A stretch of 64,000 nt of DNA from Macrostomum lignano (GCA_002269645.1 NIVC01002076.1:1-64000); one strand, 5' to 3'. Counted from the first letter of the stretch, positions 1 to 64,000 are shown. Notes: generated from the sequence alone by a model not told the origin. Numbers and translations: made by a program.

Positions 1-1500
1 TTTTCCCCCTACTACCCCGCATTCCCCCTCCAGCTTCCATCTTCTATCCTCTAGCCAACCCTTCAGCCCTATCCTTCCCTCTAACCCTACCCCACCCCCT
101 TTCCCTCCAGCCTACCCTCCTTCTCTGCAGCACCACCCTCCTACCCTCTAGCCCACCCTCCTTCTCTCTAGCCCACCCTCCTTCCCTCTAGCCCACCCTC
201 CCTTCCCTCTAGCCCTACCCTCCTTTCCCTCTAGCCCTACCCTCCTTTTCCTCCAGCCCCACTCTCCTTCCCTCCAGCCCCACTCTCCTTCCCTCCAGCC
301 CCACCCTCCTTCCCTCCAGCCCGACTCTCCTTCCCTCAAGCCCTGCCCTCTTCCCCTACTGCCCCACGCTCCCCTCCAGCTTCCATCCTCTTCTACCCTC
401 TAGCCCCACCCTCTTACCCTTCAGCCCCATCCTTCCCTCTAACCCTACCCCCTTTCCCTCCAGCCCTACCCTCCTTCCCTCCAGCCCTACCCTCCTTCCC
501 TCCAGCCCACTCTCCTTCCCTCCATCCCACCCTCCTTCCCTCTAGCCTGCCCTCCTCCTCGACTTTCCACCCTCCCTTCCAGCTTCACCCTCTCCTCCCT
601 CCAGGACCCACCCTCCCTCCTTCTAGCCCTACCCTCCTTCCCTCCAGCCCCACTCGCCTTCCCTCTAGCCCACCCTCCTTCCCTCTAGCCCTACCCTCCT
701 TCCCTCCAGCCCCACTCTCCTTCCCTCCAGCCCCACCCTCCTTCCCTCCAGCCCGACACTCCTTCCCTCCAGCCCCACTCTCCTTCCCTCAAGCCCCGCC
801 CTCTTCCTTTACTGCCCCACGCTCCCTCCAGCTTCCATCCTCTTCCCCTCTAGCCCCACCCTCTTACCCTTCCACCCCATCCTTCCCTCTAACCCTACCC
901 CTTTCCCTCCAGCCCCACTCGCCTTAGCTCCAGCCCCACCCTCCTCTCTAGCCCTACCCTCCTTTCCCTCAGCCACACCCTCCTTCCCTCCAGCCCTGCT
1001 CTCCTTTCCTCTAGCCCACTCTCCTTCCCTCCAGCCCCACTCTCCTTCCCTCCAGCCCCACCCTCCTTCCCTCCAGCCACACCCTCCTTCCCTCCAGCCC
1101 TGCTCTCCTTTCCTCTAGCCCCACTCTCCTTCCTCCAGCCCCACTCTCTTCCCTCCAGCCCCACCCTCCTTCCCTCCAGCCCTACCCTCCTTCTCTGCAG
1201 CACCACCCTCCTTCCCTCCAGCCCGACTCTCCTTCCCTCAAGCCCCGCCCTCTTCCCCTACTGCCCCACGCTCCCCTCTCAGCTTCCATCCTCTTCTACC
1301 CTCTAGCCCCACCCTCTTACCCTTTAGCCCCATCCTTCCTTCCAGCACCACCGCCTTCTTTCCCCAACCCCAACCTCTCCTCCCTCGAGTGCTCAGCCTC
1401 TCCTCCCCTCAAGTGCTCAGCCTCTCCTCCCCTCGAGTGCTCAGCCTCTCCTCCCCTCAAGTGCTCAGCCTCTCTCCCCTCCAGCCTCACCCTCTCCTCC
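1..1500 (+). repeat. Pyrimidine-rich degenerate tandem repeat (~21-bp core CCCTCCTTCCCTCCAGCCCCA)
   Basis: Almost pure C/T on the + strand with recurring CCAGCC/CTAGCC; includes a short CTCGAGTGCTCAGCCTCTCCTCCC subarray at ~1380-1480. Confidence 0.9.
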
Positions 1501-1729
1501 CCCAGCATGAACATCTTCGCCCCTACTGGCCCACCCTTCGCCCTGCAGTCCCCACCCTATTCTCCTTTTCAGCCTCACCCTTTTTTCGTAGCTTTGTTAA
1601 TTAAATTTAATTATCCGTTTTAGAAGTAAAAACGAATATTTCTCCTTCCTCTCTTCAGAATCTCCTCGATGGGGAGAAAAAAGATAAGGCCAAGGCAAAA
1701 CCTAACAATAGCAAACCAAGCAATGGAGA

Positions 1730-2290
1730 CAATGCTACGGAGGGCCTGCCAACAGGATGAGTACGGCTTTCTACTTCCTACCGAACAAACAGCCGCCAAT
1801 CGGAGAAGCGGCTGTCACTCCTGGGTTACGCCGACGACCTGCGCGCCCGCCTCTACGGCTGAGGGAGCCCCAGCGCATGCTAGACAGCCTGGTGGCAGCT
1901 GCGGCATCGGTCGGGCATCAACACCGAGAAGACGAGTGATGACTGTACCCGCGAGCTGCCTATCAAAATCACCTGCTGGGACGCCCGACGTTGTGCAGCA
2001 GCTCTACCTCGTTGCACCCTCGCTGCGACTACCAGCGAGACCTTCCGCAGGCGAAGACTTCAGCTGGTGGCCACACCATCCGCGTGGAGGCCTACTGTTC
2101 TCAACCATTGAACCAGTGCAGGACGTCCTGCTGCTCACGATGCAGGGCCTGGCGCCGGGATTACGGCGGGCGGGTCGCTACGCGGATTGCCTGCTGGATG
2201 ACGCTGGGTGATCGGCCAGGCGCACGCTGTTGTCGCTTTCAGAGAGTTAGCACTGAAAGAACTGATCTGACACTGCTCCCATTGTGAACT
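1730..2290 (+). mobile_element. Decayed non-LTR retrotransposon (RTE-like LINE) reverse transcriptase fragment
   Basis: Across frameshifts it reads EKRLSLLGYADDL (YADD at 1827-1838)...RMLDSLVAAAASVG...RRRRLQLVGHTIRVE...DVLLLTMQG...RYADCLLDDAG, i.e. RT catalytic and C-terminal motifs. The clade call is from motif recall only. Confidence 0.8.
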
Positions 2291-3204
2291 GTTACTCTTA
2301 ACTCAACCTTGCCTTGTTGTTTTCTCTTCAGAATAATTTGCCCAGCTGCAAACTGTGATGGTGCATATCTCGTACTCGCGATTAAAAAAATCTTATACTT
2401 CTTACTGTTTCACTGATTTAATTCCGAACCAACCAGGAAAACAAATTTATTTTTAATTCCGTGCATTTTTCTTGTGCTTTACTTTTACTGATCGTGTTAG
2501 TGCTATTTATTGTGTGTAATATTATCGAAAAATTCAATTTCCGATGTCATTATTTAGGAACTTCCGCTGTGCTGTATTAAAACTATATAGTACTTCCGCA
2601 TGCACTGACGTAGCATTGCGCCAATAATTTTACATTGCGTGACGCAGGCGCCTAAACCAATCTTTTGTTGAATGCTACTAGCATAATAATCCTTTGAAAT
2701 ACATTGTATTGCTATACTGCATTGCTTTTGATGATCTAAACGAGACTAGCTAGACTCCTCACTGATCCATACGAGTATGCTCCTCAGTCCTCAAGCGAAC
2801 TACGAGTATATGGAAACGAGAGCAGATTGAGCTAGCAGCAAACTTAGTATTTGATCTTCGGATCACGGATAGAATCAAGAAAATGTAGATCTGGCACTTA
2901 CACAAAAGTCCTTGATTTAATGGAATACAGCAATTTTCAATCTGTCACTTTTTCAACTTCAACTTTTTTAAATTTGGATTGGCGCAAGTCTCCTTTACAT
3001 CGTCAAAAGCAATACTGGTTCCAATCAAGAGAATGATTTGTTGATAACTGTATTTCACTCTTTGAGCTGAACGCTGTGTTTGACCATTATTTTGTTGGTG
3101 TACAGCGTGCAACAGATCGCATGAATTGGTAAATTTCCTTTCATGCGCTCCTTTCATCCTATAATTCTGGTAGGGGGCGCTGCTGTTGCAAAGAGCGGCG
3201 GTGG

Positions 3205-4770
3205 ATAGCGGAGCTGTTGCAGGAGCTGCGGCAGATAGCGGAGCTGTTGCAGGAGCTGCGGCAGATAGCGGAGCTGTTGCAGGAGCTGCGGCAGATAGCG
3301 GAGCTGTTGCAGGAGCTGCGGCAGATAGCGGAGCTGTTGCAGGAGCTGCGGCAGATAGCGGAGCTGTTGCAGGAGCTGCGGCAGATAGCGGAGCTGTTGC
3401 AGGAGCTGCGGCAGATAGCGGAGCTGTTGCAGGAGCTGCGGCAGATAGCGGAGCTGTTGCAGGAGCTGCGGCAGATAGCGGAGCTGTTGCAGGAGCTGCG
3501 GCAGATAGCGGAGCTGTTACAGGAGCTGCGGCAGATAGCGGAGCTGTTACAGGAGCTGCGGCAGATAGCGGAGCTGTTGCAGGAGCTGCGGCAGATAGCG
3601 GAGCTGTTGCAGGAGCTGCGGCAGATAGCGGAGCTGTTGCAGGAGCTGCGGCAGATAGCGGAGCTGTTACAGGAGCTGCGGCAGATAGCGGAGCTGTTAC
3701 AGGAGCTGCGGCAGATAGCGGAGCTGTTACAGGAGCTGCGGCAGATAGCGGAGCTGTTGCAGGAGCTGCGGCAGATAGCGGAGCTGTTACAGGAGCTGCG
3801 GCAGATAGCGGAGCTGTTACAGGAGCTGCGGCAGATAGCGGAGCTGTTGCAGGAGCTGCGGCAGATAGCGGAGCTGTTGCAGGAGCTGCGGCAGATAGCG
3901 GAGCTGTTACAGGAGCTGCGGCAGATAGCGGAGCTGTTACAGGAGCTGCGGCAGATAGCGGAGCTGTTACAGGAGCTGCGGCAGATAGCGGAGCTGTTAC
4001 AGGAGCTGCGGCAGATAGCGGAGCTGTTACAGGAGCTGCGGCAGATAGCGGAGCTGTTACAGGAGCTGCGGCAGATAGCGGAGCTGTTGCAGGAGCTGCG
4101 GCAGATAGCGGAGCTGTTGCAGGAGCTGCGGCAGATAGCGGAGCTGTTGCAGGAGCTGCGGCAGATAGCGGAGCTGTTACAGGAGCTGCGGCAGATAGCG
4201 GAGCTGTTACAGGAGCTGCGGCAGATAGCGGAGCTGTTACAGGAGCTGCGGCAGATAGCGGAGCTGTTGCAGGAGCTGCGGCAGATAGCGGAGCTGTTGC
4301 AGGAGCTGCGGCAGATAGCGGAGCTGTTGCAGGAGCTGCGGCAGATAGCGGAGCTGTTGCAGGAGCTGCGGCAGATAGCGGAGCTGTTGCAGGAGCTGCG
4401 GCAGATAGCGGAGCTGTTACAGGAGCTGCGGCAGATAGCGGAGCTGTTGCAGGAGCTGCGGCAGATAGCGGAGCTGTTGCAGGAGCTGCGGCAGATAGCG
4501 GAGCTGTTGCAGGAGCTGCGGCAGATAGCGGAGCTGTTGCAGGAGCTGCGGCAGATAGCGGAGCTGTTGCAGGAGCTGCGGCAGATAGCGGAGCTGTTGC
4601 AGGAGCTGCGGCAGATAGCGGAGCTGTTGCAGGAGCTGCGGCAGATAGCGGAGCTGTTACAGGAGCTGCGGCAGATAGCGGAGCTGTTACAGGAGCTGCG
4701 GCAGATAGCGGAGCTGTTACAGGAGCTGCGGCAGATAGCGGAGCTGTTACAGGAGCGGCGGCAGATAGCA
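3205..4770 (+). repeat. 30-bp minisatellite GATAGCGGAGCTGTT(G/A)CAGGAGCTGCGGCA, ~52 units
   Basis: Exact 30-bp period; about 21 units carry the A variant. Confidence 0.98.
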
Positions 4771-5889
4771 GATTTACTCGTATCCCAAAAATATTCGCCT
4801 TTAAAATTGCATACAGTGTTTGAAAAAATCAATTGTGGAGTTTTAGATGCTTGAATCAATTTTGCTTAAGCCAGTGGCGTTTGCCGTACATGCCGTTCAA
4901 TCTTTTTGTACATAAGGCCAAGCATAATTCTCAAATGGTAGATTTATCGCTTGGTTTCAAGTGCGTTAAGTCCTGTCACGAGTGCGCATAGCCTCCTCGC
5001 CTGTGTGGAGTTTTATTAGCCATTGATGAGGCTCCATGACCAGTAGCGCACTTGATCCAGTAATCTTTACGCACGAATTAAGGAATCTTAAAAACGAATA
5101 ACCAATTAAGAAATTTATTTGCGAAGCTGTTTTCTGATTTAGACAAGCGTATAGACATTTAGAGGAATTGGAACTTACCATACTGCTAAGGAAAGGGAAA
5201 ACAGCTTGTCTGCATGGAGTTCTCACAGGAAGCTGGAGTTTTACCATAAGACTATAAGAGATATACATGTAAAGAGACGAAGAGTGGGGACTAAAATTTT
5301 GAGTTGGTCCAGGAAGAAGAGGTGACGAGAAGGACGACAAGAGCTGAAAATGTCTCTAACCACTACAGATCGACTAAGGCTTTAGACTGGCATGGAGTGA
5401 CGGCGCTGGTTGATGAGCACTGGCTGTCTCCGGCGATTTTTTGACGAAGATCACAGGCAAACAATTCAAATAGACTTTTGGATTACCGGAGATTGATGGA
5501 GCTGGCTAAGAAGAAGCTGTACTGGTGGAGTTGACAAGAATATTTGCGCTCAGTAACTCGAGAAGACCAGCTGAATTGAAGGGACAAAGCGAGAAGATCG
5601 TTCTTTATTTGGGCCTCTTTTGGAAGCTTGCTTCTGCGCACATACAGCCATGACCTGACCTGAAGGACCTGACAAGATGTAAGAAAGGTCTACTAGCTAC
5701 ATTTAGATGCCGGCGTCAAATTTCTCTACATAACAGCACCAACGGAACCTTGTTCCAGATAATGACCTGTGCCCCAACATTCTCAATGAGTGCCAGTCCA
5801 ATCGCGTCTCCACCGAAGGAATTGCCAATCTGAGATAACGCTACACTCCCGTAGCTATCGTATCACGCGATATATCCTCAATGACCACT

Positions 5890-6260
5890 GCTGGAACCCT
5901 GGGTGAGCTCCACTGCTACCTGCACTGACGGTTCAAAGCAGTCAATCAACACCGGCTTTGATGTTGGGATCTTTCTGAACGGGAGGGTTTCGCAACCAAC
6001 GCTCAGTACACTGAGGTCAACTCCAGTGTTTTCCAAAATGAATTAGTTCTCGCCATCAGCTCCTGCACTGCAGAGCTTCTCGCCACTGGCGTAACCGGTA
6101 AGAGCATAACCGAAACCGGCCTTGTAGACTTGGCATGGCATCTGTGGCTGCAGCGTCAATTCTAAAACATTCCTTGACATGTTGGGTTCCACCAACGAAT
6201 TTACTCTTCACTGGGTTCCGGGGCATGTGCAGGAGCGGTGGAAGATAGCAGAGCTGTTGC
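5890..6260 (+). mobile_element. Degenerate retrotransposon RNase H fragment (non-LTR type)
   Basis: TDGSK (5924-5938), SVFQNE-L-LAI and LHWVPGHV (WVPGHV at 6212-6229) motifs in the correct order, broken by frameshifts. Confidence 0.75.
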
Positions 6261-6574
6261 AAGGAGCTGCAGCGGTGGTAGATAGTGGAGCATGGCCGGC
6301 AGGGCGGGAGCGAAGAGTAGAAGTGGCAGGCTGCAGAAGCTTTTTGTTGTTTTGCATGGCTGCTAAACATGTAAATGCTGAAGTTAATTATGATAAATTG
6401 AGTACATGTGCGTGTGAGATGTGCTTTTTATTAGCCATAAACGGTATGCAGTATGTACAGTACAGCTACATTAGCATACATATATATTGTAGTTCAATAA
6501 CATTTTGACTCAAACGAGTCCGGCGTTCGAGTCACGACGATGTGCCATTTTTTTAATTTATTTAGTCTCCAGAC

Positions 6575-6760
6575 CACAAGTCCTCAAGGATACGGTACAA
6601 GATCAAGGAAGCTGGCTGCTGCCTCTGGATGTCTGGATGTCCACTCGACCCAGTTCCATATATTCTATATCGGATTGAGGTCTGGTGACTGTGCTGGCCA
6701 GTCCATGGTGCGAATGTTGTTCTCAGCTATGCTCGGCTATGCGCACTCGTGACAGGACTT
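6575..6760 (-). mobile_element. Tc1/mariner transposase C-terminal fragment, inactivated
   Basis: Minus strand reads AENNIRTMDWPAQSPDLNPI*NIWNWVE, the Tc1 WPxxSPDLNPIENxW motif with the catalytic Glu replaced by TAG; downstream ...LYRILEDLWSG. Confidence 0.85.
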
Positions 6761-6957
6761 AACGCACTTGAAACCAAGCGATAAATCTACCATTTGAGAA
6801 TTATGCTTGGCCTTATGTACAAAAAGATTGAACGGCATGTACGGCAAACGCCACTGGCTTAAGCAAAATTGATTCAAGCATCTAAAACTCCACAATTGAT
6901 TTTTTCAAACACTGTATGCAATTTTAAAGGCGAATATTTTTGGGATACGAGTAAATC

Positions 6958-9787
6958 TGCTATCTGCCGCAGCTCCTGTAACAGCTCCGCTATCTGCCGC
7001 AGCTCCTGCAACAGCTCCGCTATCTGCCGCAGCTCCTGCAACAGCTCCGCTATCTGCCGCAGCTCCTGCAACAGCTCCGCTATCTGCCGCAGCTCCTGCA
7101 ACAGCTCCGCTATCTGCCGCAGCTCCTGCAACAGCTCCGCTATCTGCCGCAGCTCCTGCAACAGCTCCGCTATCTGCCGCAGCTCCTGCAACAGCTCCGC
7201 TATCTGCCGCAGCTCCTGCAACAGCTCCGCTATCTGCCGCAGCTCCTGCAACAGCTCCGCTATCTGCCGCAGCTCCTGCAACAGCTCCGCTATCTGCCGC
7301 AGCTCCTGCAACAGCTCCGCTATCTGCCGCAGCTCCTGCAACAGCTCCGCTATCTGCCGCAGCTCCTGCAACAGCTCCGCTATCTGCCGCAGCTCCTGCA
7401 ACAGCTCCGCTATCTGCCGCAGCTCCTGCAACAGCTCCGCTATCTGCCGCAGCTCCTGCAACAGCTCCGCTATCTGCCGCAGCTCCTGCAACAGCTCCGC
7501 TATCTGCCGCAGCTCCTGCAACAGCTCCGCTATCTGCCGCAGCTCCTGCAACAGCTCCGCTATCTGCCGCAGCTCCTGCAACAGCTCCGCTATCTGCCGC
7601 AGCTCCTGCAACAGCTCCGCTATCTGCCGCAGCTCCTGCAACAGCTCCGCTATCTGCCGCAGCTCCTGCAACAGCTCCGCTATCTGCCGCAGCTCCTGCA
7701 ACAGCTCCGCTATCTGCCGCAGCTCCTGCAACAGCTCCGCTATCTGCCGCAGCTCCTGCAACAGCTCCGCTATCTGCCGCAGCTCCTGCAACAGCTCCGC
7801 TATCTGCCGCAGCTCCTGCAACAGCTCCGCTATCTGCCGCAGCTCCTGCAACAGCTCCGCTATCTGCCGCAGCTCCTGCAACAGCTCCGCTATCTGCCGC
7901 AGCTCCTGCAACAGCTCCGCTATCTGCCGCAGCTCCTGCAACAGCTCCGCTATCTGCCGCAGCTCCTGCAACAGCTCCGCTATCTGCCGCAGCTCCTGCA
8001 ACAGCTCCGCTATCTGCCGCAGCTCCTGCAACAGCTCCGCTATCTGCCGCAGCTCCTGCAACAGCTCCGCTATCTGCCGCAGCTCCTGCAACAGCTCCGC
8101 TATCTGCCGCAGCTCCTGCAACAGCTCCGCTATCTGCCGCAGCTCCTGCAACAGCTCCGCTATCTGCCGCAGCTCCTGCAACAGCTCCGCTATCTGCCGC
8201 AGCTCCTGCAACAGCTCCGCTATCTGCCGCAGCTCCTGCAACAGCTCCGCTATCTGCCGCAGCTCCTGCAACAGCTCCGCTATCTGCCGCAGCTCCTGCA
8301 ACAGCTCCGCTATCTGCCGCAGCTCCTGTAACAGCTCCGCTATCTGCCGCAGCTCCTGCAACAGCTCCGCTATCTGCCGCAGCTCCTGCAACAGCTCCGC
8401 TATCTGCCGCAGCTCCTGCAACAGCTCCGCTATCTGCCGCAGCTCCTGCAACAGCTCCGCTATCTGCCGCAGCTCCTGCAACAGCTCCGCTATCTGCCGC
8501 AGCTCCTGCAACAGCTCCGCTATCTGCCGCAGCTCCTGCAACAGCTCCGCTATCTGCCGCAGCTCCTGCAACAGCTCCGCTATCTGCCGCAGCTCCTGCA
8601 ACAGCTCCGCTATCTGCCGCAGCTCCTGCAACAGCTCCGCTATCTGCCGCAGCTCCTGCAACAGCTCCGCTATCTGCCGCAGCTCCTGCAACAGCTCCGC
8701 TATCTGCCGCAGCTCCTGCAACAGCTCCGCTATCTGCCGCAGCTCCTGCAACAGCTCCGCTATCTGCCGCAGCTCCTGCAACAGCTCCGCTATCTGCCGC
8801 AGCTCCTGCAACAGCTCCGCTATCTGCCGCAGCTCCTGCAACAGCTCCGCTATCTGCCGCAGCTCCTGCAACAGCTCCGCTATCTGCCGCAGCTCCTGCA
8901 ACAGCTCCGCTATCTGCCGCAGCTCCTGCAACAGCTCCGCTATCTGCCGCAGCTCCTGCAACAGCTCCGCTATCTGCCGCAGCTCCTGCAACAGCTCCGC
9001 TATCTGCCGCAGCTCCTGCAACAGCTCCGCTATCTGCCGCAGCTCCTGCAACAGCTCCGCTATCTGCCGCAGCTCCTGCAACAGCTCCGCTATCTGCCGC
9101 AGCTCCTGCAACAGCTCCGCTATCTGCCGCAGCTCCTGCAACAGCTCCGCTATCTGCCGCAGCTCCTGCAACAGCTCCGCTATCTGCCGCAGCTCCTGCA
9201 ACAGCTCCGCTATCTGCCGCAGCTCCTGCAACAGCTCCGCTATCTGCCGCAGCTCCTGCAACAGCTCCGCTATCTGCCGCAGCTCCTGCAACAGCTCCGC
9301 TATCTGCCGCAGCTCCTGCAACAGCTCCGCTATCTGCCGCAGCTCCTGCAACAGCTCCGCTATCTGCCGCAGCTCCTGCAACAGCTCCGCTATCTGCCGC
9401 AGCTCCTGCAACAGCTCCGCTATCTGCCGCAGCTCCTGCAACAGCTCCGCTATCTGCCGCAGCTCCTGCAACAGCTCCGCTATCTGCCGCAGCTCCTGCA
9501 ACAGCTCCGCTATCTGCCGCAGCTCCTGCAACAGCTCCGCTATCTGCCGCAGCTCCTGCAACAGCTCCGCTATCTGCCGCAGCTCCTGCAACAGCTCCGC
9601 TATCTGCCGCAGCTCCTGCAACAGCTCCGCTATCTGCCGCAGCTCCTGCAACAGCTCCGCTATCTGCCGCAGCTCCTGCAACAGCTCCGCTATCTGCCGC
9701 AGCTCCTGCAACAGCTCCGCTATCTGCCGCAGCTCCTGCAACAGCTCCGCTATCTGCCGCAGCTCCTGCAACAGCTCCGCTATCCAC
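6958..9787 (-). repeat. 30-bp minisatellite, ~94 units (arm B)
   Basis: Same unit reversed; only 2 units (near 6979 and 8329) carry the variant base. Confidence 0.98.
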
Positions 9788-10689
9788 CGCCGCTCTTTGC
9801 AACAGCAGCGCCCCCTACCAGAATTATAGGATGAAAGGAGCGCATGAAAGGAAATTTACCAATTCATGCGATCTGTTGCACGCTGTACACCAACAAAATA
9901 ATGGTCAAACACAGCGTTCAGCTCAAAGAGTGAAATACAGTTATCAACAAATCATTCTCTTGGATTGGAACCAGTATTGCTTTTGACGATGTAAAGGAGA
10001 CTTGCGCCAATCCAAATTTAAAAAAGTTGAAGTTGAAAAAGTGACAGATTGAAAATTGCTGTATTCCATTAAATCAAGGACTTTTGTGTAAGTGCCAGAT
10101 CTACATTTTCTTGATTCTATCCGTGATCCGAAGATCAAATACTAAGTTTGCTGCTAGCTCAATCTGCTCTCGTTTCCATATACTCGTAGTTCGCTTGAGG
10201 ACTGAGGAGCATACTCGTATGGATCAGTGAGGAGTCTAGCTAGTCTCGTTTAGATCATCAAAAGCAATGCAGTATAGCAATACAATGTATTTCAAAGGAT
10301 TATTATGCTAGTAGCATTCAACAAAAGATTGGTTTAGGCGCCTGCGTCACGCAATGTAAAATTATTGGCGCAATGCTACGTCAGTGCATGCGGAAGTACT
10401 ATATAGTTTTAATACAGCACAGCGGAAGTTCCTAAATAATGACATCGGAAATTGAATTTTTCGATAATATTACACACAATAAATAGCACTAACACCGATC
10501 AGTAAAAGTAAAGCACAAGAAAAATGCACGGAATTAAAAATAAATTTGTTTTCCTGGTTGGTTCGGAATTAAATCAGTGAAACAGTAAGAAGTATAAGAT
10601 TTTTTAATCGCGAGTACGAGATATGCACCATCACAGTTTGCAGCTGGGCAAATTATTCTGAAGAGAAAACAACAAGGCAAGGTTGAGTT

Positions 10690-11270
10690 AAGAGTAACAG
10701 TTCACAATGGGAGGCAGTGTCAGATCAGTTCTTTCAGTGCTAACTCTCTGAAAGCGACAACAGCGTGCGCCTGGCCGATCACCCAGCGTCATCCAGCAGG
10801 CAATCCGCGTAGCGACCCGCCCGGCCGTAATCCCGGCGCCAGGGGCCCTGCATCGTGAGCAGCAGGACGTCCTGCACTGGTTCAATGGTTGAGAACAGTA
10901 GGCCTCCACGCGGATGGTGTGGCCCACCAGCTGAAGTCTTCGCCTGCGGAAGGTCTCGCTGGGTAGTCGCAGCGAGGGTGCAACGAGGTAGAGCTGCTGC
11001 ACAACCGTCGGGCGTCCCAGCAGGTGATTTTGATAGGCAGCTCCGCGGGTACAGTCATCACCTCGTCTTCTCGGTGTTGATGCCCGACCGATGCCGCAGC
11101 TGCCACCAGGCTGTCTAGCATGCGCTGGGGCTCCCTCAGCCGTAGAGGCGGGCAGCGCCAGGTCGTCGGCGTAACCCAGGAGTGACAGCCGCTTCTCCGA
11201 TTGGCGGCTGTTTGTTCGGTAGGAAGTAGAAAGCCGTACTCATCCTGTTGGCAGGGCCCTCCGTAGCATT
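10690..11270 (-). mobile_element. Same LINE RT fragment in arm B
   Basis: YADD codons at 11162-11173 on the minus strand; frameshifted. Confidence 0.8.
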
Positions 11271-11499
11271 GTCTCCATTGCTTGGTTTGCTATTGTTAGG
11301 TTTTGCCTTGGCCTTATCTTTTTCTCCCCATCGAGGAGATTCTGAAGAGAGGAAGGAGAAATATTCGTTTTTACTTCTAAAACGGATAATTAAATTTAAT
11401 TAACAAAGCTACGAAAAAAGGGTGAGGCTGAAAAGGAGAATAGGGTGGGGACTGCAGGGGCGAAGGGTGGGCCAGTAGGGGCGAAGATGTTCATGCTGG

Positions 11500-13520
11500 G
11501 GGAGGAGAGGGTGAGGCTGGAGGGGAGGAGAGGCTGAGCACTTGAGGGGAGGAGAGGCTGAGCACTCGAGGGGAGGAGAGGCTGAGCACTTGAGGGGAGG
11601 AGAGGCTGAGCACTCGAGGGGAGGAGAGGTTGGGGTTGGGGAAAGAAGGCGGTGGTGCTGGAAGGAAGGATGGGGCTAAAGGGTAAGAGGGTGGGGCTAG
11701 AGGGTAGAAGAGGATGGAAGCTGGAGGGGAGCGTGGGGCAGTAGGGGAAGAGGGCGGGGCTTGAGGGAAGGAGAGTCGGGCTGGAGGGAAGGAGGGTGGT
11801 GCTGCAGAGAAGGAGGGTAGGGCTGGAGGGAAGGAGGGTGGGGCTGGAGGGAAGGAGAGTGGGGCTGGAGGGAAGGAGAGTGGGGCTAGAGGAAAGGAGA
11901 GCAGGGCTGGAGGGAAGGAGGGTGTGGCTGGAGGGAAGGAGGGTGGGGCTGGAGGGAAGGAGAGTGGGGCTGGAGGGAAGGAGAGTGGGGCTAGAGGAAA
12001 GGAGAGCAGGGCTGGAGGGAAGGAGGGTGTGGCTGGAGGGAAGGAGGGTAGGGCTAGAGGGAGGGAGGGTGGGGCTGGAGCTAAGGCGAGTGGGGCTGGA
12101 GGGAAAGGGGTAGGGTTAGAGGGAAGGATGGGGTGGAAGGGTAAGAGGGTGGGGCTAGAGGGTGGAAGAGGATGGAAGCTGGAGGGGAGCGTGGGGCAGT
12201 AAAGGAAGAGGGCGGGGCTTGAGGGAAGGAGAGTGGGGCTGGAGGGAAGGAGTGTCGGGCTGGAGGGAAGGAGGGTGGGGCTGGAGGGAAGGAGAGTGGG
12301 GCTGGAGGGAAGGAGGGTAGGGCTAGAGGGAAGGAGGGTGGGCTAGAGGGAAGGCGAGTGGGGCTGGAGGGAAGGAGGGTAGGGCTAGAAGGAGGGAGGG
12401 TGGGTCCTGGAGGGAGGAGAGGGTGGAAGCTGGAAGGGAGGGTGGAAAGTCGAGGAGGAGGGCAGGGCTAGAGGGAAGGAGGGTGGGGATGGAGGGAAGG
12501 AGAGTGGGGCTGGAGGGAAGGAGGGTAGGGCTGGAGGGAAGGAGGGTAGGGCTGGAGGGAAAGGGGGTAGGGTTAGAGGGAAGGATGGGGCTGAAGGGTA
12601 AGAGGGTGGGGCTAGAGGGTAGAAGAGGATGGAAGCTGGAGGGGAGCGTGGGGCAGTAGGGGAAGAGGGCAGGGCTTGAGGGAAGGAGAGTCGGGCTGGA
12701 GGGAAGGAGGGTGGGGCTGGAGGGAAGGAGAGTGGGGCTGGAGGGAAGGAGAGTGGGGCTGGAGGAAAGGAGGGTAGGGCTAGAGGGAAGGAGGGTAGGG
12801 CTAGAGGGAAGGAGGGTGGGCTAGAGGGAAGGAGGGTGGGCTAGAGAGAAGGAGGGTGGGGCTAGAGGGTAGGAGGGTGGTGCTGCAGAGAAGGAGGGTA
12901 GGGCTGGAGGGAAAGGGGGTAGGGTTAGAGGGAAGGATAGGGCTGAAGGGTTGGGCTAGAGGATAGAAGATGGAAGCTGGAGGGGAATGCGGGGTAGTAG
13001 GGGAAAAAGGTAGGGCTAGAAGGAAAGCAGGGTAGCAGGGAGGGAGGATAGGGCTGGAGGGAAGGAGGGTAGTGTTGCAGGGAGGGAGGGTAGGGCTGGA
13101 GAGAAGGAGGGTGGTGGTGCAGGGAAGGAGGGTAGGGCTTGAAAGGGAGGAGGGTGAGGCTAGAAAGAAGGATAAGACTGGAAGGTAGGATGAGACTAGA
13201 GTGGAGGAGGATAGGGCTGGAAAGAAAAAAAGATGGGGCTAGAGGTTCAAAGAGGTTTAGGTGGGGCTGGAGGAAGAGGTGAGGCTAGGAGGGTTAGGCT
13301 GGAGAGGAGAAGAGAGTAAGGGCTAGAAATGAGGAAAGTAAGAACTAGAAAAGAGAAGGTAGGTAGTGAAGAGGAGAGAATAAGGATTCAAGGGGAAGAC
13401 ATGATGGGGCTAAAATAAAGAAAGGAGTAATATTGGAAGGAAGAGGAGGTAAATTTTTCAAAAAGAAAATAGGTCTAGAAAGAAGAACAGGATATAGATA
13501 GAGGTTAGAGAGGAAGAAAA
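11500..13520 (-). repeat. Purine-rich copy of the same tract in arm B, decaying into A-rich sequence
   Basis: GGCTGGAGGGAAGGAGGGTG units that become progressively A-rich beyond ~13100. Confidence 0.9.
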
Positions 13521-50614: not shown

Positions 50615-50830
50615 CGGGAACTCGAACTCGTCAGTGAACTCAGCAGGGAACTCGTCAAGGAATTCATCAGGAAGCTAGTCAGAGAACTTGTCAGGGAACT
50701 CGGCAGGGAACTCGTCAGAGAACTTGTCAGGAAACTCGTCAGAGAACTCGTCAGAGAACTCGTCAGAGAACTCGTCAGAGAACTTGTCAGGGAACTCGTC
50801 AGGGAACTCTTTTATCGAGGACTTGTCAGT
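50615..50830 (+). repeat. 12-bp repeat (GAACTCGTCAGA) just downstream of the GPCR stop codon
   Basis: Tandem array. Confidence 0.85.
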
Positions 50831-50839
50831 AAAATCTGG

Positions 50840-51847: not shown

Positions 51848-51869
51848 CGGAGAGCTGGCGAGCCTCAAT

Positions 51870-51946
51870 TGCAGACAAGCGGATCGGTCTCAAGTGCAGA
51901 CAAGCGGATCGGTCTCAAGTGCAGACAAGCGGATCGGTCTCAAGTC
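51870..51946 (+). repeat. 25-bp triplicate (GCAGACAAGCGGATCGGTCTCAAGT) immediately upstream of the GPCR start
   Basis: Three exact units. Confidence 0.9.
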
Positions 51947-54539: not shown

Positions 54540-54844
54540 GAGAGCAGACGGCAACCAAGCCCAGCCCAGCCAATCAGCGCGCCGCGCAGGGTAGAACTGA
54601 TACCCCAGGGGAGAGGGGGAGAAAGGGACAGTAAGGACTGGCCAATCGCTTGCAGAAAAGCTGGAGGTGGGTGGGGGGAGTCAGGCTGCAAAACTGAGAG
54701 AGCAGACGGCAAACAAGCCCAGCCAATCAGCGCGCCGCGCAGGGTAGAACTGATACCCCAGGGGAGAGGGGGAGAAAGGGACAGTAAGGACTGGCCAATC
54801 GGCTTGCAGAAAAGCTGGAGATGGGTGGGGGGAGTCAGGCTGCA
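54540..54844 (+). repeat. Direct duplication of ~155 bp, each copy with two CCAAT boxes
   Basis: Copies at ~54540-54690 and ~54698-54844. Confidence 0.85.
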
Positions 54845-55254
54845 TAACAAGAGGACAAAGAGTTCAAGGCGTATCAAGTAATTAAATTTAATTGATTGGG
54901 GACCCTGTGTGGACCAGACCTGCTGTTCCTGCGTACGTGCCATATCCGCATGGCATGCTTAGGAGTCGCCGGAGTTGTCCATGAATGCCTTTTTCCTTGC
55001 CTCCTAATTGCAGGCTGCGTGTCGACTGTTGCCTTGATCTGCGGCAATGCCTGCAGCCCCACCACAGCAAACTGACACTGACTCTGCAGATTCTGGCTGA
55101 CGACGATCAAAAAGGCTCGAAAAAATACTCGTCCAGCCAGGACCTGAGGCGCGTCCGGTGTTGCTGTTTGCTTTCGGCCTTTTTGCACTCGAAACCTGTC
55201 GGTCACGCCCTTTGCCGGCATAAAAGCCCGCCTGCTCAGCAACCGTCTTTAAAG

Positions 55255-55942
55255 GGGAGCACGAGAAATGCCCGCAGACGAATTGCCCGCCGAGATTTGC
55301 CCGCAGGAGATTTGCCTGTGGAGATTTGCCCGCCGAGCTTTTCCCGCGGAGATGTGCCCGCAGTGCATTTTGCCCGTGAGCGAATTGCCCGTGGAGATTT
55401 GCCCGCCGAGAATTGCCCGCCGAGATTTGCCCGCAGTGCAATTTGCCCGCGAGTGAGTTGCCCGCCGAGTTTTTCCCGCCGAGGTTTGCCCGCAATGCCT
55501 TTTTCCTGCAGCGAATTTAGCGACGCGGCAGATTTTGTCTGCATTGCCTTCCCAATGCTTTGTACGTGTTAATCTCAATAAAGAGATTTACACGATCAAA
55601 ACGTTTTGATAGTAACTGCATATCAAAAGCATATTTTTTTTGGGGGGGGGGGCAATGCAGACAGAATCTAGCTGCCAAATGCGCTGCAGGAAAAAAGCAT
55701 TGCGGGCAAACCTCGGCGGGAAAAAAACTCGGCGGGCAACTCGCTCGCGGGCAAATTGCACTGCGGGCAAATCTCGGCGGGCAATTCTCGGCGGGCAAAT
55801 CTCCACGGGCAATTCGCTCACGGGCAAAATGCACTGCGGGCAAATCTCCGCGGGAAAAGCTCGGCGGGCAAATCTCCACAGGCAAATCTCCTGCGGGCAA
55901 ATCTCGGCGGGCAATTCGTCTGCGGGCATTTCTCGTGCTCCC
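55255..55942. mobile_element. Foldback-type MITE: ~290-bp inverted arms built of 15-bp subrepeats, ~100-bp spacer
   Basis: Termini GGGAGCACGAGAAATGCCCGCAG ... CTGCGGGCATTTCTCGTGCTCCC; arms 55255-55548 and 55651-55942; subrepeat GAGATTTGCCCGC; no clear TSD. Confidence 0.75.
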
Positions 55943-57906
55943 ACTGCAAACAGTTGGTTAACCTAATGGGAAAAAACTCCCGTTCGCGTTGATAAATGCC
56001 TTTCAATAAAGATCCCTTTTATTTTTTATCCACTCAGCTTCATCTGGGATGCTGCAATCCAACGCTCTGCACCAAAAAGCCCATAAAGCTCCTAAGAAGG
56101 AAGGAGGGAGTCTCGAATTCTAAGGGATGCCGTCCAATATCTGCTGTGTGGGCCTTTGATCCTCTCTGATTTCAATGTGGACAAACGGATTCTTTGCACG
56201 TGATTGGAAATTTTCCTTAAAAAAATTCTTCTTGTTATGGATGAATTGTTTTTCAGATTCGATGTCAGCCATGCATGCAGTTTGCAGAGGGCCTTTTAGC
56301 ACTGCCGCTGATCAAGGCAGCACTGGTACCGCAGCCAGCAGAGAGGAGGCAAAGCAGTCTATATCCATTCCTCTGACCCCGGAGCGCGCACTGCACGGAT
56401 GCTGCAGACGCAGCACTCACTCGGGGTGTACAGCGGCTCTTAACTTTCCCCAAGTCTGTCGAGTGGCATGCCTACACGAGACCGGGAACCCATGCATCCC
56501 CGCTGAGCTGCTGAGCTACCGGCTCCATCCAAATTGAAGGTTTGAATCAGTCGATCGAGTTGTGAGCTTCGACCGGTCTCCATATGTATTAGTAAGGAGT
56601 ATTTTGAAATCCTAAAAATAATTATTAATTGTTATTCGTAGCCTTGACAGCCATATATAGTTCATTATCTTCCCAAATACAACGGGAAAACATACTTTAA
56701 GGTTTTTTAACTTGCGCTTCAACGCACGATTTGCTACAGGCTCTGCAGTTTTCTCATGCAAAATCCATGCATGGAAATTAGGTAAGGAGGCCTGTTCTGA
56801 AAAAACTCTAATTTGCTAATTGCATGAATAATTGCTATAATAGTATAGCTGCTGCATGACGCTCACGACCAAGCTCGTGACTTGTATTTACTCAAGCTTT
56901 AGTTTGTGATGTTAAGCTAATACATTTAGTATGAGTTTTCTCTTTTTTCAATGTACACAGTTGCAATATACAAAATCAAGTTATGATTACGTAGACGAAT
57001 TTAGAATTCAGATAAAGTGCATATCGTCTAGCCGAATATATTAAGAAAATATGTATACTTCGTTAAAATGCTTTGAAGGAAATTAACAGGCAACTTGTTA
57101 ATAAGCATGTACGATTGTTAGGTTTTGGATTGATTGGAAATGTAGTACATGCAATTTTTTGCCCCGACTCACAACAGGCCCATTATCATGGCATTTGCAA
57201 CATACAGTCACAGTTTTGCAATTGTAGATGTAAATTGTCAGTGTAGCTTACAAATTTAGAGTAATTTCGAAGCTAAAAACTGTTTTATATCAATTCTACT
57301 TGCGGCCATGATCGAAAGGCCAATTATTGCAAGCGTGGTATATCGGTGTATAATTGGTTGTTGTTAAATGTGGGTGGAGAGCTAGGCGATCTCCTCAGGA
57401 GAGCTCAGGGAAGGGCTCTACCGCGGTTGGTGATTCCCCCCAGGAAATATAGCCCGGCGCGGGTGACCAGGATTGGAGCTAGGAGTATTTTTTGCCCTAG
57501 CGACTGCAGGGCTCAACAAATTGAGGAGGACACCGAGGACCCAAACAGCGGAATCAGTTAGACGAGCGAGTTCTAAGACTGCCCCAGGCCACCACCCAAA
57601 CGGCATAACCCTAAGATTGGAACGGCTCATGACCGAAAGATAAAACCAAATAAAACGGGGATACAAAAAACTAATAGAGAAGGATCACCTGAACCGTTTT
57701 ACGGCTCAACCACAGGGCTGCTGGCATCAACTGCATGGGCTCTACCGTAAACTTTTGTGAATGGTCGTCTTTCCTGCTCGGCGGGTACAACCGCGAGGCT
57801 CAAAGTCCTTGATCTACCGTCCAGCATCACATTCACTCCAGGTACGCCCCCCCAGAACCAAGGTAGGGCAGAAAAGAGAGAATGAATCCGAAAATCAACA
57901 TTGTGT

Positions 57907-57953
57907 GAGTAACGACGCGTTTCGCACTCCTAGGTGCATCTTCAGGTTTATTC
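57907..57953 (-). ncRNA. Second copy of the hammerhead motif on the minus strand
   Basis: Exact reverse complement of 58224-58270. Confidence 0.7.
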
Positions 57954-58223
57954 AACAACGAAATTAAACAGGTTTTGCGAATAAATATGTATGTGGAGTT
58001 GGTTATAGGTAAACAAGAAAAATTATTGAACAATCTTTCCGCCCATTGTTAAATTATTGAACAATCTTTCCGGGTGTACATTCTTTCCGCCCCCGGACTT
58101 CACTCTGCCGTACGGACTAACTCATGTGTTCTCCAATATCGATTTGTTCAATAATTTTTCTTGTTTACCTATAACCAACTCCACATACATATTTATTCGC
58201 AAAACCTGTTTAATTTCGTTGTT

Positions 58224-58270
58224 GAATAAACCTGAAGATGCACCTAGGAGTGCGAAACGCGTCGTTACTC
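58224..58270 (+). ncRNA. Minimal type I hammerhead ribozyme motif (PLE type)
   Basis: CTGAAGA-T-GCAC[CTAGGA]GTGC-GAAA-CGCG-TC; palindromic ACGCGT stem III; predicted GUC cleavage after 58263; imperfect stem I (GAATAAAC/GTTACTC). Confidence 0.7.
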
Positions 58271-59929
58271 ACACAATGTTGATTTTCGGATTCATTTTCC
58301 TTTTACTAGCCAAGCGAGCTACACTACCCGAAAAGAGAGAAGTTATTTTTGGAGTGGACATCACCTCCGTCGAGATTTAAAAATTGAGCCACCCGATTGG
58401 GCAGGTCAATTGGACTGCGCGAGACAACCCCAGAACGCCGCCCAGTAATGTGCCAGAGACTGTATCGGTGTATTAAAGTGTACCACTTGAAAATTGTGTT
58501 AAAATAGTATAAAAACTGTAAAATTCAGAAGTAGTATCACGCTTTCAAAATGCATTTTTCCAGAATTACGAATTTGTAAAAAATGTAAAAATTAATCATA
58601 AGACGCAATTACTGGAAATGTAATGAATAAAAATTATATTACAATCAATAAAGAGTATATTGTGTTATTATACTATTGTTTATTGAATATTATGCCCTGC
58701 TCGTCGAAATTTTTCTCAAAGTCAAATCCTTTTTCCTCGGTTGACCAATTCGCTTGTGGTCTTCTGCCATCAGTGTCACAAACACGTAGCAGAATAGGAC
58801 ACGTTTTTTTCGGCTTCAGAAGCGGTCAATACATGTTTTGTGTACGAAAATGTATTAGTAAGATGTATCACCCGTGACACAACGTAAGGCTCAAAAATAC
58901 CTCTTCACAAGAGCCTTAACCTTTTTTTTTAGCCTTTTCCTTGAGAGCATTTTCCTTAAAGGCAGATAATACCCGTCGATAGGTATTTGTACCCATATTT
59001 TTATGCATTTTAAGGCTTCCGTGTACTCGCGTGTAGAAGTTGTCACGGGTGATGTTGGTAAACTGTATAATTCAAATTCCATTCTAGCTAGCTATTAAAA
59101 TAATTAGCCTGCGTCAGGATTAGCAAAAATTTAAAGGGCTAGTGACCAATGTAGCTAGTTCTAGTCTAGGAAGTTGCGCATCTTACCTAGCTATCTTATT
59201 CTTGGTCTAATCGGCTAGGCCTATGCTATGCTGTTCGACCTAAATATTAAATTTTACTACTATTGCCATTTTGTTACAGATTTATTTAGGACCTACTGTT
59301 CTACCAATGTCAATGGCAATAGATTAAATTTAAAACTACCTAGGCAGCTAGGCCTAGTAATTTTGCATTTAGTAATACAAAGCCTACTGTTTCACTGATT
59401 ATTTTCTTCTATTGACTAGTAGCCCTAAATCTAAAATATTTTCTTTTCTTTTGTGTTATAAGGCCTAGCCTTTACCTTTATGTTATATTATTAAAATGTT
59501 CTTTTGACTTAATAATAGTATTAATAAGCATCTTTTTTCTTTCTTGGATGTAAAGTTAATTTGGTCCTTCTTTGATTTAATTTAATTAGCTTATATTTTA
59601 TACAATTTACTAAGGCTATAGGAATGGAAGTATTATAATATTTATATTAATTTTTTCTAACAAATATTATAAATCTGTTTTATAAGCATCAAAAATGGAA
59701 ATATAAAACAAGATAATATAGAGCACATTCTATATTGAAATATTATGCACATTTTTTAAATATTTTGATAAATAAGATTTCTCCACAAAATTAAAAAATA
59801 TTTTAGAAATTAGATTATAAACTTAAAGCCATAAACCATAGACTGGCAACTAGTTATTTACTACCATTATAAAGTAAGTCATGATATCTATCTAGTAGTC
59901 ATGACCTTTTCTTCCTCTCTAACCTCTAT

Positions 59930-61930
59930 CTATATCCTGTTCTTCTTTCTAGACCTATTTTCTTTTTGAAAAATTTACCTCCTCTTCCTTCCAATATTAC
60001 TCCTTTCTTTATTTTAGCCCCATCATGTCTTCCCCTTGAATCCTTATTCTCTCCTCTTCACTACCTACCTTCTCTTTTCTAGTTCTTACTTTCCTCATTT
60101 CTAGCCCTTACTCTCTTCTCCTCTCCAGCCTAACCCTCCTAGCCTCACCTCTTCCTCCAGCCCCACCTAAACCTCTTTGAACCTCTAGCCCCATCTTTTT
60201 TTCTTTCCAGCCCTATCCTCCTCCACTCTAGTCTCATCCTACCTTCCAGTCTTATCCTTCTTTCTAGCCTCACCCTCCTCCCTTTCAAGCCCTACCCTCC
60301 TTCCCTGCACCACCACCCTCCTTCTCTCCAGCCCTACCCTCCCTCCCTGCAACACTACCCTCCTTCCCTCCAGCCCTATCCTCCCTCCCTGCTACCCTGC
60401 TTTCCTTCTAGCCCTACCTTTTTCCCCTACTACCCCGCATTCCCCTCCAGCTTCCATCTTCTATCCTCTAGCCCAACCCTTCAGCCCTATCCTTCCCTCT
60501 AACCCTACCCCCTTTCCCTCCAGCCCTACCCTCCTTCTCTGCAGCACCACCCTCCTACCCTCTAGCCCCACCCTCCTTCTCTCTAGCCCACCCTCCTTCC
60601 CTCTAGCCCACCCTCCTTCCCTCTAGCCCTACCCTCCTTCCCTCTAGCCCTACCCTCCTTTCCTCCAGCCCCACTCTCCTTCCCTCCAGCCCCACTCTCC
60701 TTCCCTCCAGCCCCACCCTCCTTCCCTCCAGCCCGACTCTCCTTCCCTCAAGCCCTGCCCTCTTCCCCTACTGCCCCACGCTCCCCTCCAGCTTCCATCC
60801 TCTTCTACCCTCTAGCCCCACCCTCTTACCCTTCAGCCCCATCCTTCCCTCTAACCCTACCCCCTTTCCCTCCAGCCCTACCCTCCTTCCCTCCAGCCCT
60901 ACCCTCCTTCCCTCCAGCCCCACTCTCCTTCCCTCCATCCCCACCCTCCTTCCCTCTAGCCCTGCCCTCCTCCTCGACTTTCCACCCTCCCTTCCAGCTT
61001 CCACCCTCTCCTCCCTCCAGGACCCACCCTCCCTCCTTCTAGCCCTACCCTCCTTCCCTCCAGCCCCACTCGCCTTCCCTCTAGCCCACCCTCCTTCCCT
61101 CTAGCCCTACCCTCCTTCCCTCCAGCCCCACTCTCCTTCCCTCCAGCCCCACCCTCCTTCCCTCCAGCCCGACACTCCTTCCCTCCAGCCCCACTCTCCT
61201 TCCCTCAAGCCCCGCCCTCTTCCTTTACTGCCCCACGCTCCCCTCCAGCTTCCATCCTCTTCCACCCTCTAGCCCCACCCTCTTACCCTTCCACCCCATC
61301 CTTCCCTCTAACCCTACCCCCTTTCCCTCCAGCCCCACTCGCCTTAGCTCCAGCCCCACCCTCCCTCCCTCTAGCCCTACCCTCCTTCCCTCCAGCCACA
61401 CCCTCCTTCCCTCCAGCCCTGCTCTCCTTTCCTCTAGCCCCACTCTCCTTCCCTCCAGCCCCACTCTCCTTCCCTCCAGCCCCACCCTCCTTCCCTCCAG
61501 CCACACCCTCCTTCCCTCCAGCCCTGCTCTCCTTTCCTCTAGCCCCACTCTCCTTCCCTCCAGCCCCACTCTCCTTCCCTCCAGCCCCACCCTCCTTCCC
61601 TCCAGCCCTACCCTCCTTCTCTGCAGCACCACCCTCCTTCCCTCCAGCCCGACTCTCCTTCCCTCAAGCCCCGCCCTCTTCCCCTACTGCCCCACGCTCC
61701 CCTCCAGCTTCCATCCTCTTCTACCCTCTAGCCCCACCCTCTTACCCTTTAGCCCCATCCTTCCTTCCAGCACCACCGCCTTCTTTCCCCAACCCCAACC
61801 TCTCCTCCCCTCGAGTGCTCAGCCTCTCCTCCCCTCAAGTGCTCAGCCTCTCCTCCCCTCGAGTGCTCAGCCTCTCCTCCCCTCAAGTGCTCAGCCTCTC
61901 CTCCCCTCCAGCCTCACCCTCTCCTCCCCC
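59930..61930 (+). repeat. Pyrimidine-rich tract copy in arm C
   Basis: Reverse complement of 11500-13520. Confidence 0.9.
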
Positions 61931-62157
61931 AGCATGAACATCTTCGCCCCTACTGGCCCACCCTTCGCCCCTGCAGTCCCCACCCTATTCTCCTTTTCAG
62001 CCTCACCCTTTTTTCGTAGCTTTGTTAATTAAATTTAATTATCCGTTTTAGAAGTAAAAACGAATATTTCTCCTTCCTCTCTTCAGAATCTCCTCGATGG
62101 GGAGAAAAAGATAAGGCCAAGGCAAAACCTAACAATAGCAAACCAAGCAATGGAGAC

Positions 62158-62740
62158 AATGCTACGGAGGGCCCTGCCAACAGGATGAGTACGGCTTTCT
62201 ACTTCCTACCGAACAAACAGCCGCCAATCGGAGAAGCGGCTGTCACTCCTGGGTTACGCCGACGACCTGGCGCTGCCCGCCTCTACGGCTGAGGGAGCCC
62301 CAGCGCATGCTAGACAGCCTGGTGGCAGCTGCGGCATCGGTCGGGCATCAACACCGAGAAGACGAGGTGATGACTGTACCCGCGGAGCTGCCTATCAAAA
62401 TCACCTGCTGGGACGCCCGACGGTTGTGCAGCAGCTCTACCTCGTTGCACCCTCGCTGCGACTACCCAGCGAGACCTTCCGCAGGCGAAGACTTCAGCTG
62501 GTGGGCCACACCATCCGCGTGGAGGCCTACTGTTCTCAACCATTGAACCAGTGCAGGACGTCCTGCTGCTCACGATGCAGGGCCCCTGGCGCCGGGATTA
62601 CGGCCGGGCGGGTCGCTACGCGGATTGCCTGCTGGATGACGCTGGGTGATCGGCCAGGCGCACGCTGTTGTCGCTTTCAGAGAGTTAGCACTGAAAGAAC
62701 TGATCTGACACTGCCTCCCATTGTGAACTGTTACTCTTAA
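62158..62740 (+). mobile_element. Same LINE RT fragment in arm C
   Basis: TACGCCGACGAC (YADD) at 62255-62266; frameshifted. Confidence 0.8.
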
Positions 62741-63644
62741 CTCAACCTTGCCTTGTTGTTTTCTCTTCAGAATAATTTGCCCAGCTGCAAACTGTGATGG
62801 TGCATATCTCGTACTCGCGATTAAAAAATCTTATACTTCTTACTGTTTCACTGATTTAATTCCGAACCAACCAGGAAAACAAATTTATTTTTAATTCCGT
62901 GCATTTTTCTTGTGCTTTACTTTTACTGATCGGTGTTAGTGCTATTTATTGTGTGTAATATTATCGAAAAATTCAATTTCCGATGTCATTATTTAGGAAC
63001 TTCCGCTGTGCTGTATTAAAACTATATAGTACTTCCGCATGCACTGACGTAGCATTGCGCCAATAATTTTACATTGCGTGACGCAGGCGCCTAAACCAAT
63101 CTTTTGTTGAATGCTACTAGCATAATAATCCTTTGAAATACATTGTATTGCTATACTGCATTGCTTTTGATGATCTAAACGAGACTAGCTAGACTCCTCA
63201 CTGATCCATACGAGTATGCTCCTCAGTCCTCAAGCGAACTACGAGTATATGGAAACGAGAGCAGATTGAGCTAGCAGCAAACTTAGTATTTGATCTTCGG
63301 ATCACGGATAGAATCAAGAAAATGTAGATCTGGCACTTACACAAAAGTCCTTGATTTAATGGAATACAGCAATTTTCAATCTGTCACTTTTTCAACTTCA
63401 ACTTTTTTAAATTTGGATTGGCGCAAGTCTCCTTTACATCGTCAAAAGCAATACTGGTTCCAATCCAAGAGAATGATTTGTTGATAACTGTATTTCACTC
63501 TTTGAGCTGAACGCTGTGTTTGACCATTATTTTGTTGGTGTACAGCGTGCAACAGATCGCATGAATTGGTAAATTTCCTTTCATGCGCTCCTTTCATCCT
63601 ATAATTCTGGTAGGGGGCGCTGCTGTTGCAAAGAGCGGCGGTGG

Positions 63645-64000
63645 ATAGCGGAGCTGTTGCAGGAGCTGCGGCAGATAGCGGAGCTGTTGCAGGAGCTGCG
63701 GCAGATAGCGGAGCTGTTGCAGGAGCTGCGGCAGATAGCGGAGCTGTTGCAGGAGCTGCGGCAGATAGCGGAGCTGTTGCAGGAGCTGCGGCAGATAGCG
63801 GAGCTGTTGCAGGAGCTGCGGCAGATAGCGGAGCTGTTGCAGGAGCTGCGGCAGATAGCGGAGCTGTTGCAGGAGCTGCGGCAGATAGCGGAGCTGTTGC
63901 AGGAGCTGCGGCAGATAGCGGAGCTGTTGCAGGAGCTGCGGCAGATAGCGGAGCTGTTACAGGAGCTGCGGCAGATAGCGGAGCTGTTACAGGAGCTGCG
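63645..64000 (+). repeat. 30-bp minisatellite start (arm C, truncated)
   Basis: 10 G-variant units then 2 A-variant units, the same order as in arm A. Confidence 0.97.

Follow-up and report, generated by a model that had tools for sequence, protein, structure and literature searches.

Contigs assembled from long reads can look circular or self-overlapping when they end in unresolved repeats, as is known of the Canu assembler. Long inverted repeats are also found at sites of rearrangement: in the human FLNA-EMD region (HsInv0389), the segment between 11.3-kb inverted repeats that are >99% identical inverts by non-allelic homologous recombination (bioRxiv 10.1101/2020.04.20.051185), and the foldback-type transposons—Drosophila FB, Galileo (PMC3573991) and Tetris (PMC4079207)—have long, internally repetitive inverted arms and generate inversions; the arms of Galileo measure at most about 1.25 kb (PMC3573991). 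The locus we set against these systems is a 44-kb block carrying PICALM, CDK1 and MPPE1 genes and a G-protein-coupled receptor (GPCR) gene, which lies among three arms of a long repeat in the flatworm Macrostomum lignano. The window, by which we mean the whole stretch of 64,000 nucleotides analysed, comprises bases 1-64000 of GenBank NIVC01002076.1, a 71,846-bp contig of the assembly GCA_002269645.1 (Mlig_3_7); record and window coordinates coincide, position 1 of the window being position 1 of the record and hence the contig end. An earlier note made from this sequence had proposed that it spans more than one turn of a 60.4-kb repeat. The reading that we prefer, with a probability of about 0.6, is that it represents a normal chromosomal copy of the block from one subgenome, flanked on both sides by a young fold-back repeat that broke the Canu assembly.

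M. lignano is a neopolyploid, and three subgenomes, S, L1 and L2, have been published for its DV1 line (PMC10733133). Mlig_3_7 was assembled by Canu 1.4 from PacBio continuous long reads (CLR) and then polished with Pilon; the genome is rich in tandem repeats and more than half repetitive, and the assembly is redundant (PMC5730564).

Self-comparison of the window gives the order arm A (plus strand), spacer, arm B (minus strand), unique block, arm C (plus strand). The block occupies 14661-58766 (44,106 bp), between the inverted arms B and C exactly where the earlier note had placed it. Arm B (6735-14660; 7,926 bp) is a complete inverted copy of the repeat, and arm C (58767-64000) is cut by the window end; the outer ends of B and C fall on the same nucleotide. 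Over 5,234 nt, B (9428-14660) and C (58767-64000) are reverse complements of each other with two mismatches and one 1-nt indel in a G run, an identity of 99.94%; they are long, highly identical inverted repeats enclosing 44,106 bp of unique DNA, the arrangement expected of an invertible segment. Arm A (1-4993) lacks its outermost 1,652 bp because the contig starts within it, and its positions 1-3560 align in direct orientation to 60419-64000 of C. A and B face each other over a spacer of 1,741 bp (4994-6734), again as previously claimed, and their innermost 224 bp are identical. The length and identity of the arm repeats make a chance origin impossible. At both block junctions the outer terminus of the arm (CCATCAGTG...) is the same nucleotide though the two flanks bear no relation to each other; the right end of the block, where it adjoins arm C, reads ...GTGGTCTTCTG.

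Each arm consists of an AT-rich outer 1.5 kb, arrays of 21-bp and 24-bp units, a GC-rich core of 1.7 kb and an array of 30-bp units, and it is in this last array that the arms can be told apart: outside it they are the same, but A has 53 units and B 95, with different variant content. The array of A (3182-4769; 52.9 units) opens with a degenerate unit, followed by 10 TTGC and two TTAC units, and goes on as a mixture, with 22 TTAC units in all; the start of the C array is identical to it over the 12.6 units visible before the window end, and both mismatches between B and C are the two TTAC units of C. The B array (6959-9806; 94.9 units) is almost all TTGC. The variant order on which the idea of a 60.4-kb period had been founded thus stands unit by unit, in A and C as well as in B, and so does the offset between the A and C arrays (63622 - 3182 = 60,440 bp). 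The match of the A and C arrays shows that C is an arm of the type of A, which we call 'a' as opposed to the 'b' type of B, and that the order (a-spacer-b)-block-(a...) is real in the assembly.

Outside its array, what sets A apart from C is of another kind. The alignment of A to C contains 41 indel events and one substitution, and of 48 inserted or deleted bases 44 belong to homopolymers. The differences are confined to 1-3026, at densities of about 20, 15, 7 and 1 per kb going inward from the contig start; from 3027 to 4993, A agrees with B except for array units. An indel to substitution ratio of 41:1 is the signature of a low-coverage consensus, and the differences are best read, from their type and distribution, as unpolished, low-coverage long-read consensus and not as evolutionary divergence; the same ratio rules out A as a diverged biological paralogue. 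It follows that only the array of A carries independent information. The outer truncation of A is simply where the contig stops and no biological boundary: A has the character of a contig-end artefact, a feature at the end of a contig with a degraded consensus.

For users of the record we add that the first 3 kb of NIVC01002076.1 (1-3026) carry about 1.4% homopolymer indel errors with respect to the two other arm copies, and that open reading frames (ORFs) read from this region, for example 1669-2211, are unreliable.

Is there, then, a unit of 60.4 kb in the window? In direct orientation arm sequence alone occurs twice (1-3560 and 60419-64000), and it is also present inverted as B; no base of block or spacer occurs twice, and each of the genes is found once. 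A periodic second turn would re-enter the block at 14,661 + 60,440 = 75,101, beyond the record end at 71,846, so even the whole deposited contig cannot show one. Of the proposal that A and C are the same locus one period apart, what holds is that they are arms of one type in the same orientation, 60,440 bp apart, with B the odd one out; more than one turn of a gene-carrying repeat is unsupported, the overlap being arm-only. Two head-to-tail copies with their genes, as a tandem amplicon would have, are not present in the window, and the long single-copy region is not re-entered as it would be in a closed circular replicon of plastid type. When ORFs of 60 aa or more lying outside tandem repeats were scanned against Pfam, the only families returned were ANTH/ENTH, Pkinase, Metallophos, 7tm_1 and a weak DDE_3; the scans confirm the assignment of PICALM, CDK1, MPPE1 and a GPCR to the block, and they reveal no recombinase, replication or partition gene such as a 2-micron-like plasmid would encode. 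Scans for tRNA and Rfam RNA in the window found none. Of the three origins offered earlier for the supposed period, an assembler overlap comes closest to the evidence, while amplicon and extrachromosomal circle are unsupported.

The four-gene block is also internal to two longer contigs of Mlig_3_7, NIVC01001410.1 (294,633 bp; locus L001) and NIVC01001615.1 (215,619 bp; locus L003); a third locus, L002 (record 34,750-57,145), lies in the window itself, matching 34,750-57,145 at 100%. Colinearity with the window extends from about 36.2 kb to 58.4 kb in L001 or 58.77 kb in L003, at 86-96% identity, with a pairwise substitution divergence between block copies of 4.3-6.3%. Between the three copies the CDK1 proteins show 2-4 differences in 334 residues; the window and L003 have identical MPPE1. 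CDK1 and MPPE1 are thus found at three assembly loci, whose contigs measure 71.8, 215.6 and 294.6 kb, and three is also the number of subgenomes; since three diverged, intact copies are what S, L1 and L2 predict, the assembly gives no hint of additional CDK1 copies, and nothing points to the suggested amplification of the gene.

The same comparison bears on the arm boundary. L003 is homologous to the window up to 58,766, and from the next base onward it is unrelated to arm C or to any other window sequence; nothing similar to window 1-15,200 was found in the sampled parts of L001 and L003. The stop of homology at 58,766, taken with an arm terminus shared between unrelated flanks, argues that the arm ends at a real structural break peculiar to this copy, either an insertion or a rearrangement breakpoint. 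The block itself is, by these alignments, ancestral chromosomal DNA, not the cargo of a mobile or autonomous element. We also considered B-block-C as a giant transposon with terminal inverted repeats, and rejected it because the block is present in all three subgenome copies.

In the reading we prefer, PICALM-CDK1-MPPE1-GPCR is a conserved block of which three subgenome copies are expected, and the window would hold one of them. The flanking repeat would be young, minisatellite-rich and of low copy number, and 6.7-7.9 kb long. It would form a fold-back pair, in which a 1.7-kb spacer separates an 'a' arm, with its mixed array of 53 units, from an inverted 'b' arm, with an array of 95 units. To the left of the block lies one such pair (A-spacer-B); to its right, C would belong as 'a' arm to a second pair of like orientation. 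Reads presumably failed to bridge a fold-back of roughly 16 kb, and the contig would then stop inside it on both sides, the 60,440-bp 'period' being the spacing of two like-oriented arms in a locus that is probably chromosomal and of normal copy number. The extent of the contig fits: beyond the 44-kb block it has 14,660 bp on the left and 13,080 bp on the right, the overhang to be expected if an assembler works outward from unique DNA and continues into a repeat until its longest anchored reads give out. Both contig ends lie 13-15 kb into the same repeat, and the direct overlap of the contig head with later sequence is repeat only. If the repeats are physically as assembled, gene conversion between arms would keep them identical and so explain their near-identity; recombination between the inverted arms B and C could flip the 44-kb block, and the direct arms A and C could, by recombining, cause the loss or duplication of a 60.4-kb unit.

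The most serious competitor is that the whole 60.4-kb unit—arm, spacer, inverted arm and block—is repeated in tandem at least twice on the chromosome and was collapsed by the assembler into a contig with overlapping ends. That A and C share orientation, sequence and array variant order at a distance of 60,440 bp is just what this would produce, as is the presence of arms at both ends of the block, with L003 homology ending exactly at the junction; the implied overlap of head and tail would be 71,846 - 60,440 = about 11.4 kb. We nevertheless consider a tandem unit unlikely: no unique sequence is duplicated in the window, and the contig ends before the block could begin again (75,101 > 71,846); there are only three gene-carrying loci, as three subgenomes predict; and with only two copies half of the reads at either block edge would lead to flanks other than arm, yet the consensus of B and C is clean. 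The same overlap of head and tail could come from a 60.4-kb extrachromosomal circle, with a plastid-like order of large single-copy region, inverted repeat, small single-copy region and inverted repeat, assembled with terminal redundancy and isomerising or amplifying through its inverted repeats. Its arithmetic closes, 44,106 + 7,926 + 1,741 + about 6,666 giving about 60,439, but its closure was never observed, its supposed inverted repeats are unequal (53 against 95 array units), and its content would be four spliced nuclear genes of an ordinary kind, colinear with two paralogous blocks on chromosomes, with neither the recombinase, replication or partition genes sought in the Pfam scans nor any tRNA or Rfam RNA. 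We find such a circle scarcely credible.

A further rival is a mis-join, in which one of the block/arm junctions or the A-spacer-B segment would be a chimeric Canu join through repeats, the three arms not all lying beside the block in the genome. The low-coverage consensus of the first 3 kb would suit such a mis-join, as would the nature of a genome more than half repetitive (PMC5730564) and of an assembly in which chimeric scaffolds are reportedly numerous and some variants wrongly expanded or collapsed (PMC10733133). Yet both block/arm junctions are sharp and have the identical arm terminus, and the right-hand one coincides with the end of L003 homology, unlike a random mis-join; and A-spacer-B is ruled out as a technical fold-back read chimera, its arms differing by 42 array units and its 1.7-kb spacer being asymmetric. 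A mis-join accordingly seems to us distinctly improbable. If, on the other hand, everything is physically as assembled, a bolder possibility arises: two direct copies of the ~16-kb fold-back and the 44-kb block with its four housekeeping genes might together form a composite cassette, which could flip via its inverted arms, be excised as a 60.4-kb circle or duplicated via its direct arms, and might even have moved as a foldback-mediated macro-transposon. This we regard as a long shot, though if true it would offer a route to copy-number change of one CDK1 homeolog during rediploidisation of a neopolyploid.

Several points weigh against the normal chromosomal copy that we favour. A and C are identical at every informative position seen, and the sequence cannot separate two physical copies of the fold-back from one locus reached twice, be it in a tandem unit or in a circle; the second spacer and 'b' arm that should follow C are inferred from lengths only. 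The copy count is taken from assembly loci, where collapsed copies would be invisible, and the junction comparison with other subgenome copies covers the right side (58766/58767). Moreover, about 36% of Mlig_3_7 by length has been reported as chimeric scaffolds (PMC10733133).

In arm A the 21-bp array lies at 90-1346 and the 24-bp repeats at 1374-1502; their counterparts in arm B lie at 11660-13172 and 11499-11629. The spacer is asymmetric, non-palindromic sequence made up of transposon debris. At 6560-6734 on its minus strand is a C-terminal fragment of a Tc1/mariner-like transposase ('WPAQSPDLNPI'; Pfam DDE_3, E = 1.4e-4, under the curated cutoff), which ends exactly at the spacer/B boundary; that the fragment is cut there suggests that the palindrome was produced by an inverted duplication whose novel joint lies at this boundary. 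Likenesses to reverse transcriptase ('YADD') and RNase H ('HWVPGH') noticed by eye in arm and spacer had no Pfam support even at E = 10, and no protein on record corresponds to the junction-spanning ORF at 58623-58877 or the arm ORF at 62426-62740.

The genes of the block are spliced animal genes whose introns are largely filled by minisatellites. The PICALM/AP180-like gene (15158-36751, plus strand) is unannotated on this contig; our model has eight exons encoding 612 aa, with all introns GT-AG, and its product matches Pfam ANTH at 2.9e-44 and ENTH at 6.5e-8. The copy on the 215-kb contig is annotated as an ENTH/ANTH product, likewise of 612 aa. The 612-aa model is absent from the protein collection, and a search of representative proteins with exon 3 retrieved only a 90-aa fragment, at 97% (P0247). 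Intron 3 contains a satellite of 12.2 kb (22517-34684; G-rich strand plus) with the 25-bp unit TGGATTGGAGATTTGGATTGAGCAG in about 477 copies and a GC skew of about +0.8; this satellite may be the reason why PICALM went unannotated here.

CDK1 (38983-42861, plus strand) has five exons encoding 334 aa with a Pkinase domain, and its spliced product is identical to the annotated PAA61055.1 (P0242); the best match in a homolog search was 69%, the hits coming from spiralians and hemichordates. Each of its four introns (39070-42663) is nearly filled by a different minisatellite, with units of 24, 22, 32 and 21 bp, and these arrays recur in L001 and L003 with other copy numbers.

The MPPE1/PGAP5 metallophosphoesterase gene (44750-47145, plus strand; Metallophos) encodes 371 aa as annotated, PAA61056.1 (P0241), and its best match is BOX15_Mlig000731g1 of M. 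lignano, at 98%. Upstream of the annotated start, 'MLLADTHLLG' at 44750, the open frame runs on (44600-44750) through a conserved-looking PGAP5 N-terminal segment, 'LVAFCEYLIYYAVLLACTWP', and because of this PGAP5-like continuation the annotated start may lie too far downstream. The GPCR gene, of the rhodopsin family (50840-51847, minus strand; 7tm_1, E = 1.4e-13), is a single intact exon of 335 aa, unannotated in the GenBank record. Its exact product is not on record, and a word-indexed protein search found no homolog at E <= 1e-5; it is kept at 95-96% nucleotide identity in L001 and L003.

The right part of the block is free of genes. At 54563-54848 it has a 153-bp unit in about 1.9 tandem copies (Tandem Repeats Finder, 97% matches; 86 nt identical in both), which carries CCAAT-box-like 'AGCCAATCAGCGCG' motifs. 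Two fold-back palindromes follow, one at 55255-55942 with 220-nt arms of 14-bp sub-repeats, 99% complementary, around a 248-nt loop, and one at 57870-58307 with 164-nt arms, 98% complementary, around a 110-nt loop. Far smaller than A-spacer-B but likewise with arms of tandem repeats, they count in favour of the reading we prefer.

Taken as a whole, the structure is what long and nearly identical repeats ordinarily bring about when a difficult polyploid genome is assembled; amplification, circularity and a plastid-like or 2-micron-like mechanism find no support. Its main use is as a caution: where the assembly is that of a repeat-rich polyploid, a contig that overlaps itself and has inverted repeats should be taken for neither a replicon nor an amplicon without read evidence. 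It represents no new class of system. Near-identical inverted and direct repeats of 6.7-7.9 kb around a four-gene block are nonetheless a plausible hotspot for inversion, deletion and duplication that would set one subgenome copy apart, and as such might serve the study of subgenome divergence in M. lignano.

Comparison with described systems places the locus as follows. With repeat-ended long-read contigs it shares the start at a contig end, a consensus quality that rises over the first 3 kb and an overlap of head and tail confined to repeat; what differs is the repeat, a fold-back exceptional in its length of about 16 kb, whose arms hardly differ except in their arrays. The likeness to plastid quadripartite genomes and the yeast 2-micron plasmid drawn by the earlier note is geometric only. 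The order inverted repeat, short single-copy, inverted repeat, long single-copy is indeed common to them, and isomerisation would be possible in principle, but here nothing points to a circle or to autonomous replication, neither a recombinase nor a replication gene turned up, the arms differ in array size, and the genes are intron-containing nuclear genes in a block with chromosomal paralogues. A-spacer-B resembles foldback-type elements, and by analogy may be akin to them: like FB, Galileo and Tetris it has inverted arms built of arrays, of 21-, 24- and 30-bp units, in unequal copy number (53 against 95), around a loop of 1,741 bp, and one arm terminus is joined to two different flanks. Its arms, at 6.7-7.9 kb, are however five to six times the maximum of Galileo, and its loop holds transposon debris only, the truncated Tc1/mariner-like fragment falling short of a transposase. 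For inversion of the block the closest analogue is FLNA-EMD. The M. lignano locus differs in that it has a third, directly oriented arm and that one block orientation is known, from the assembly; but in both cases inverted repeats, here of at least 5.2 kb (probably 6.7-7.9 kb) and 99.94% identity, surround a block of few genes, here 44 kb long, and a flip of this block would break no gene.

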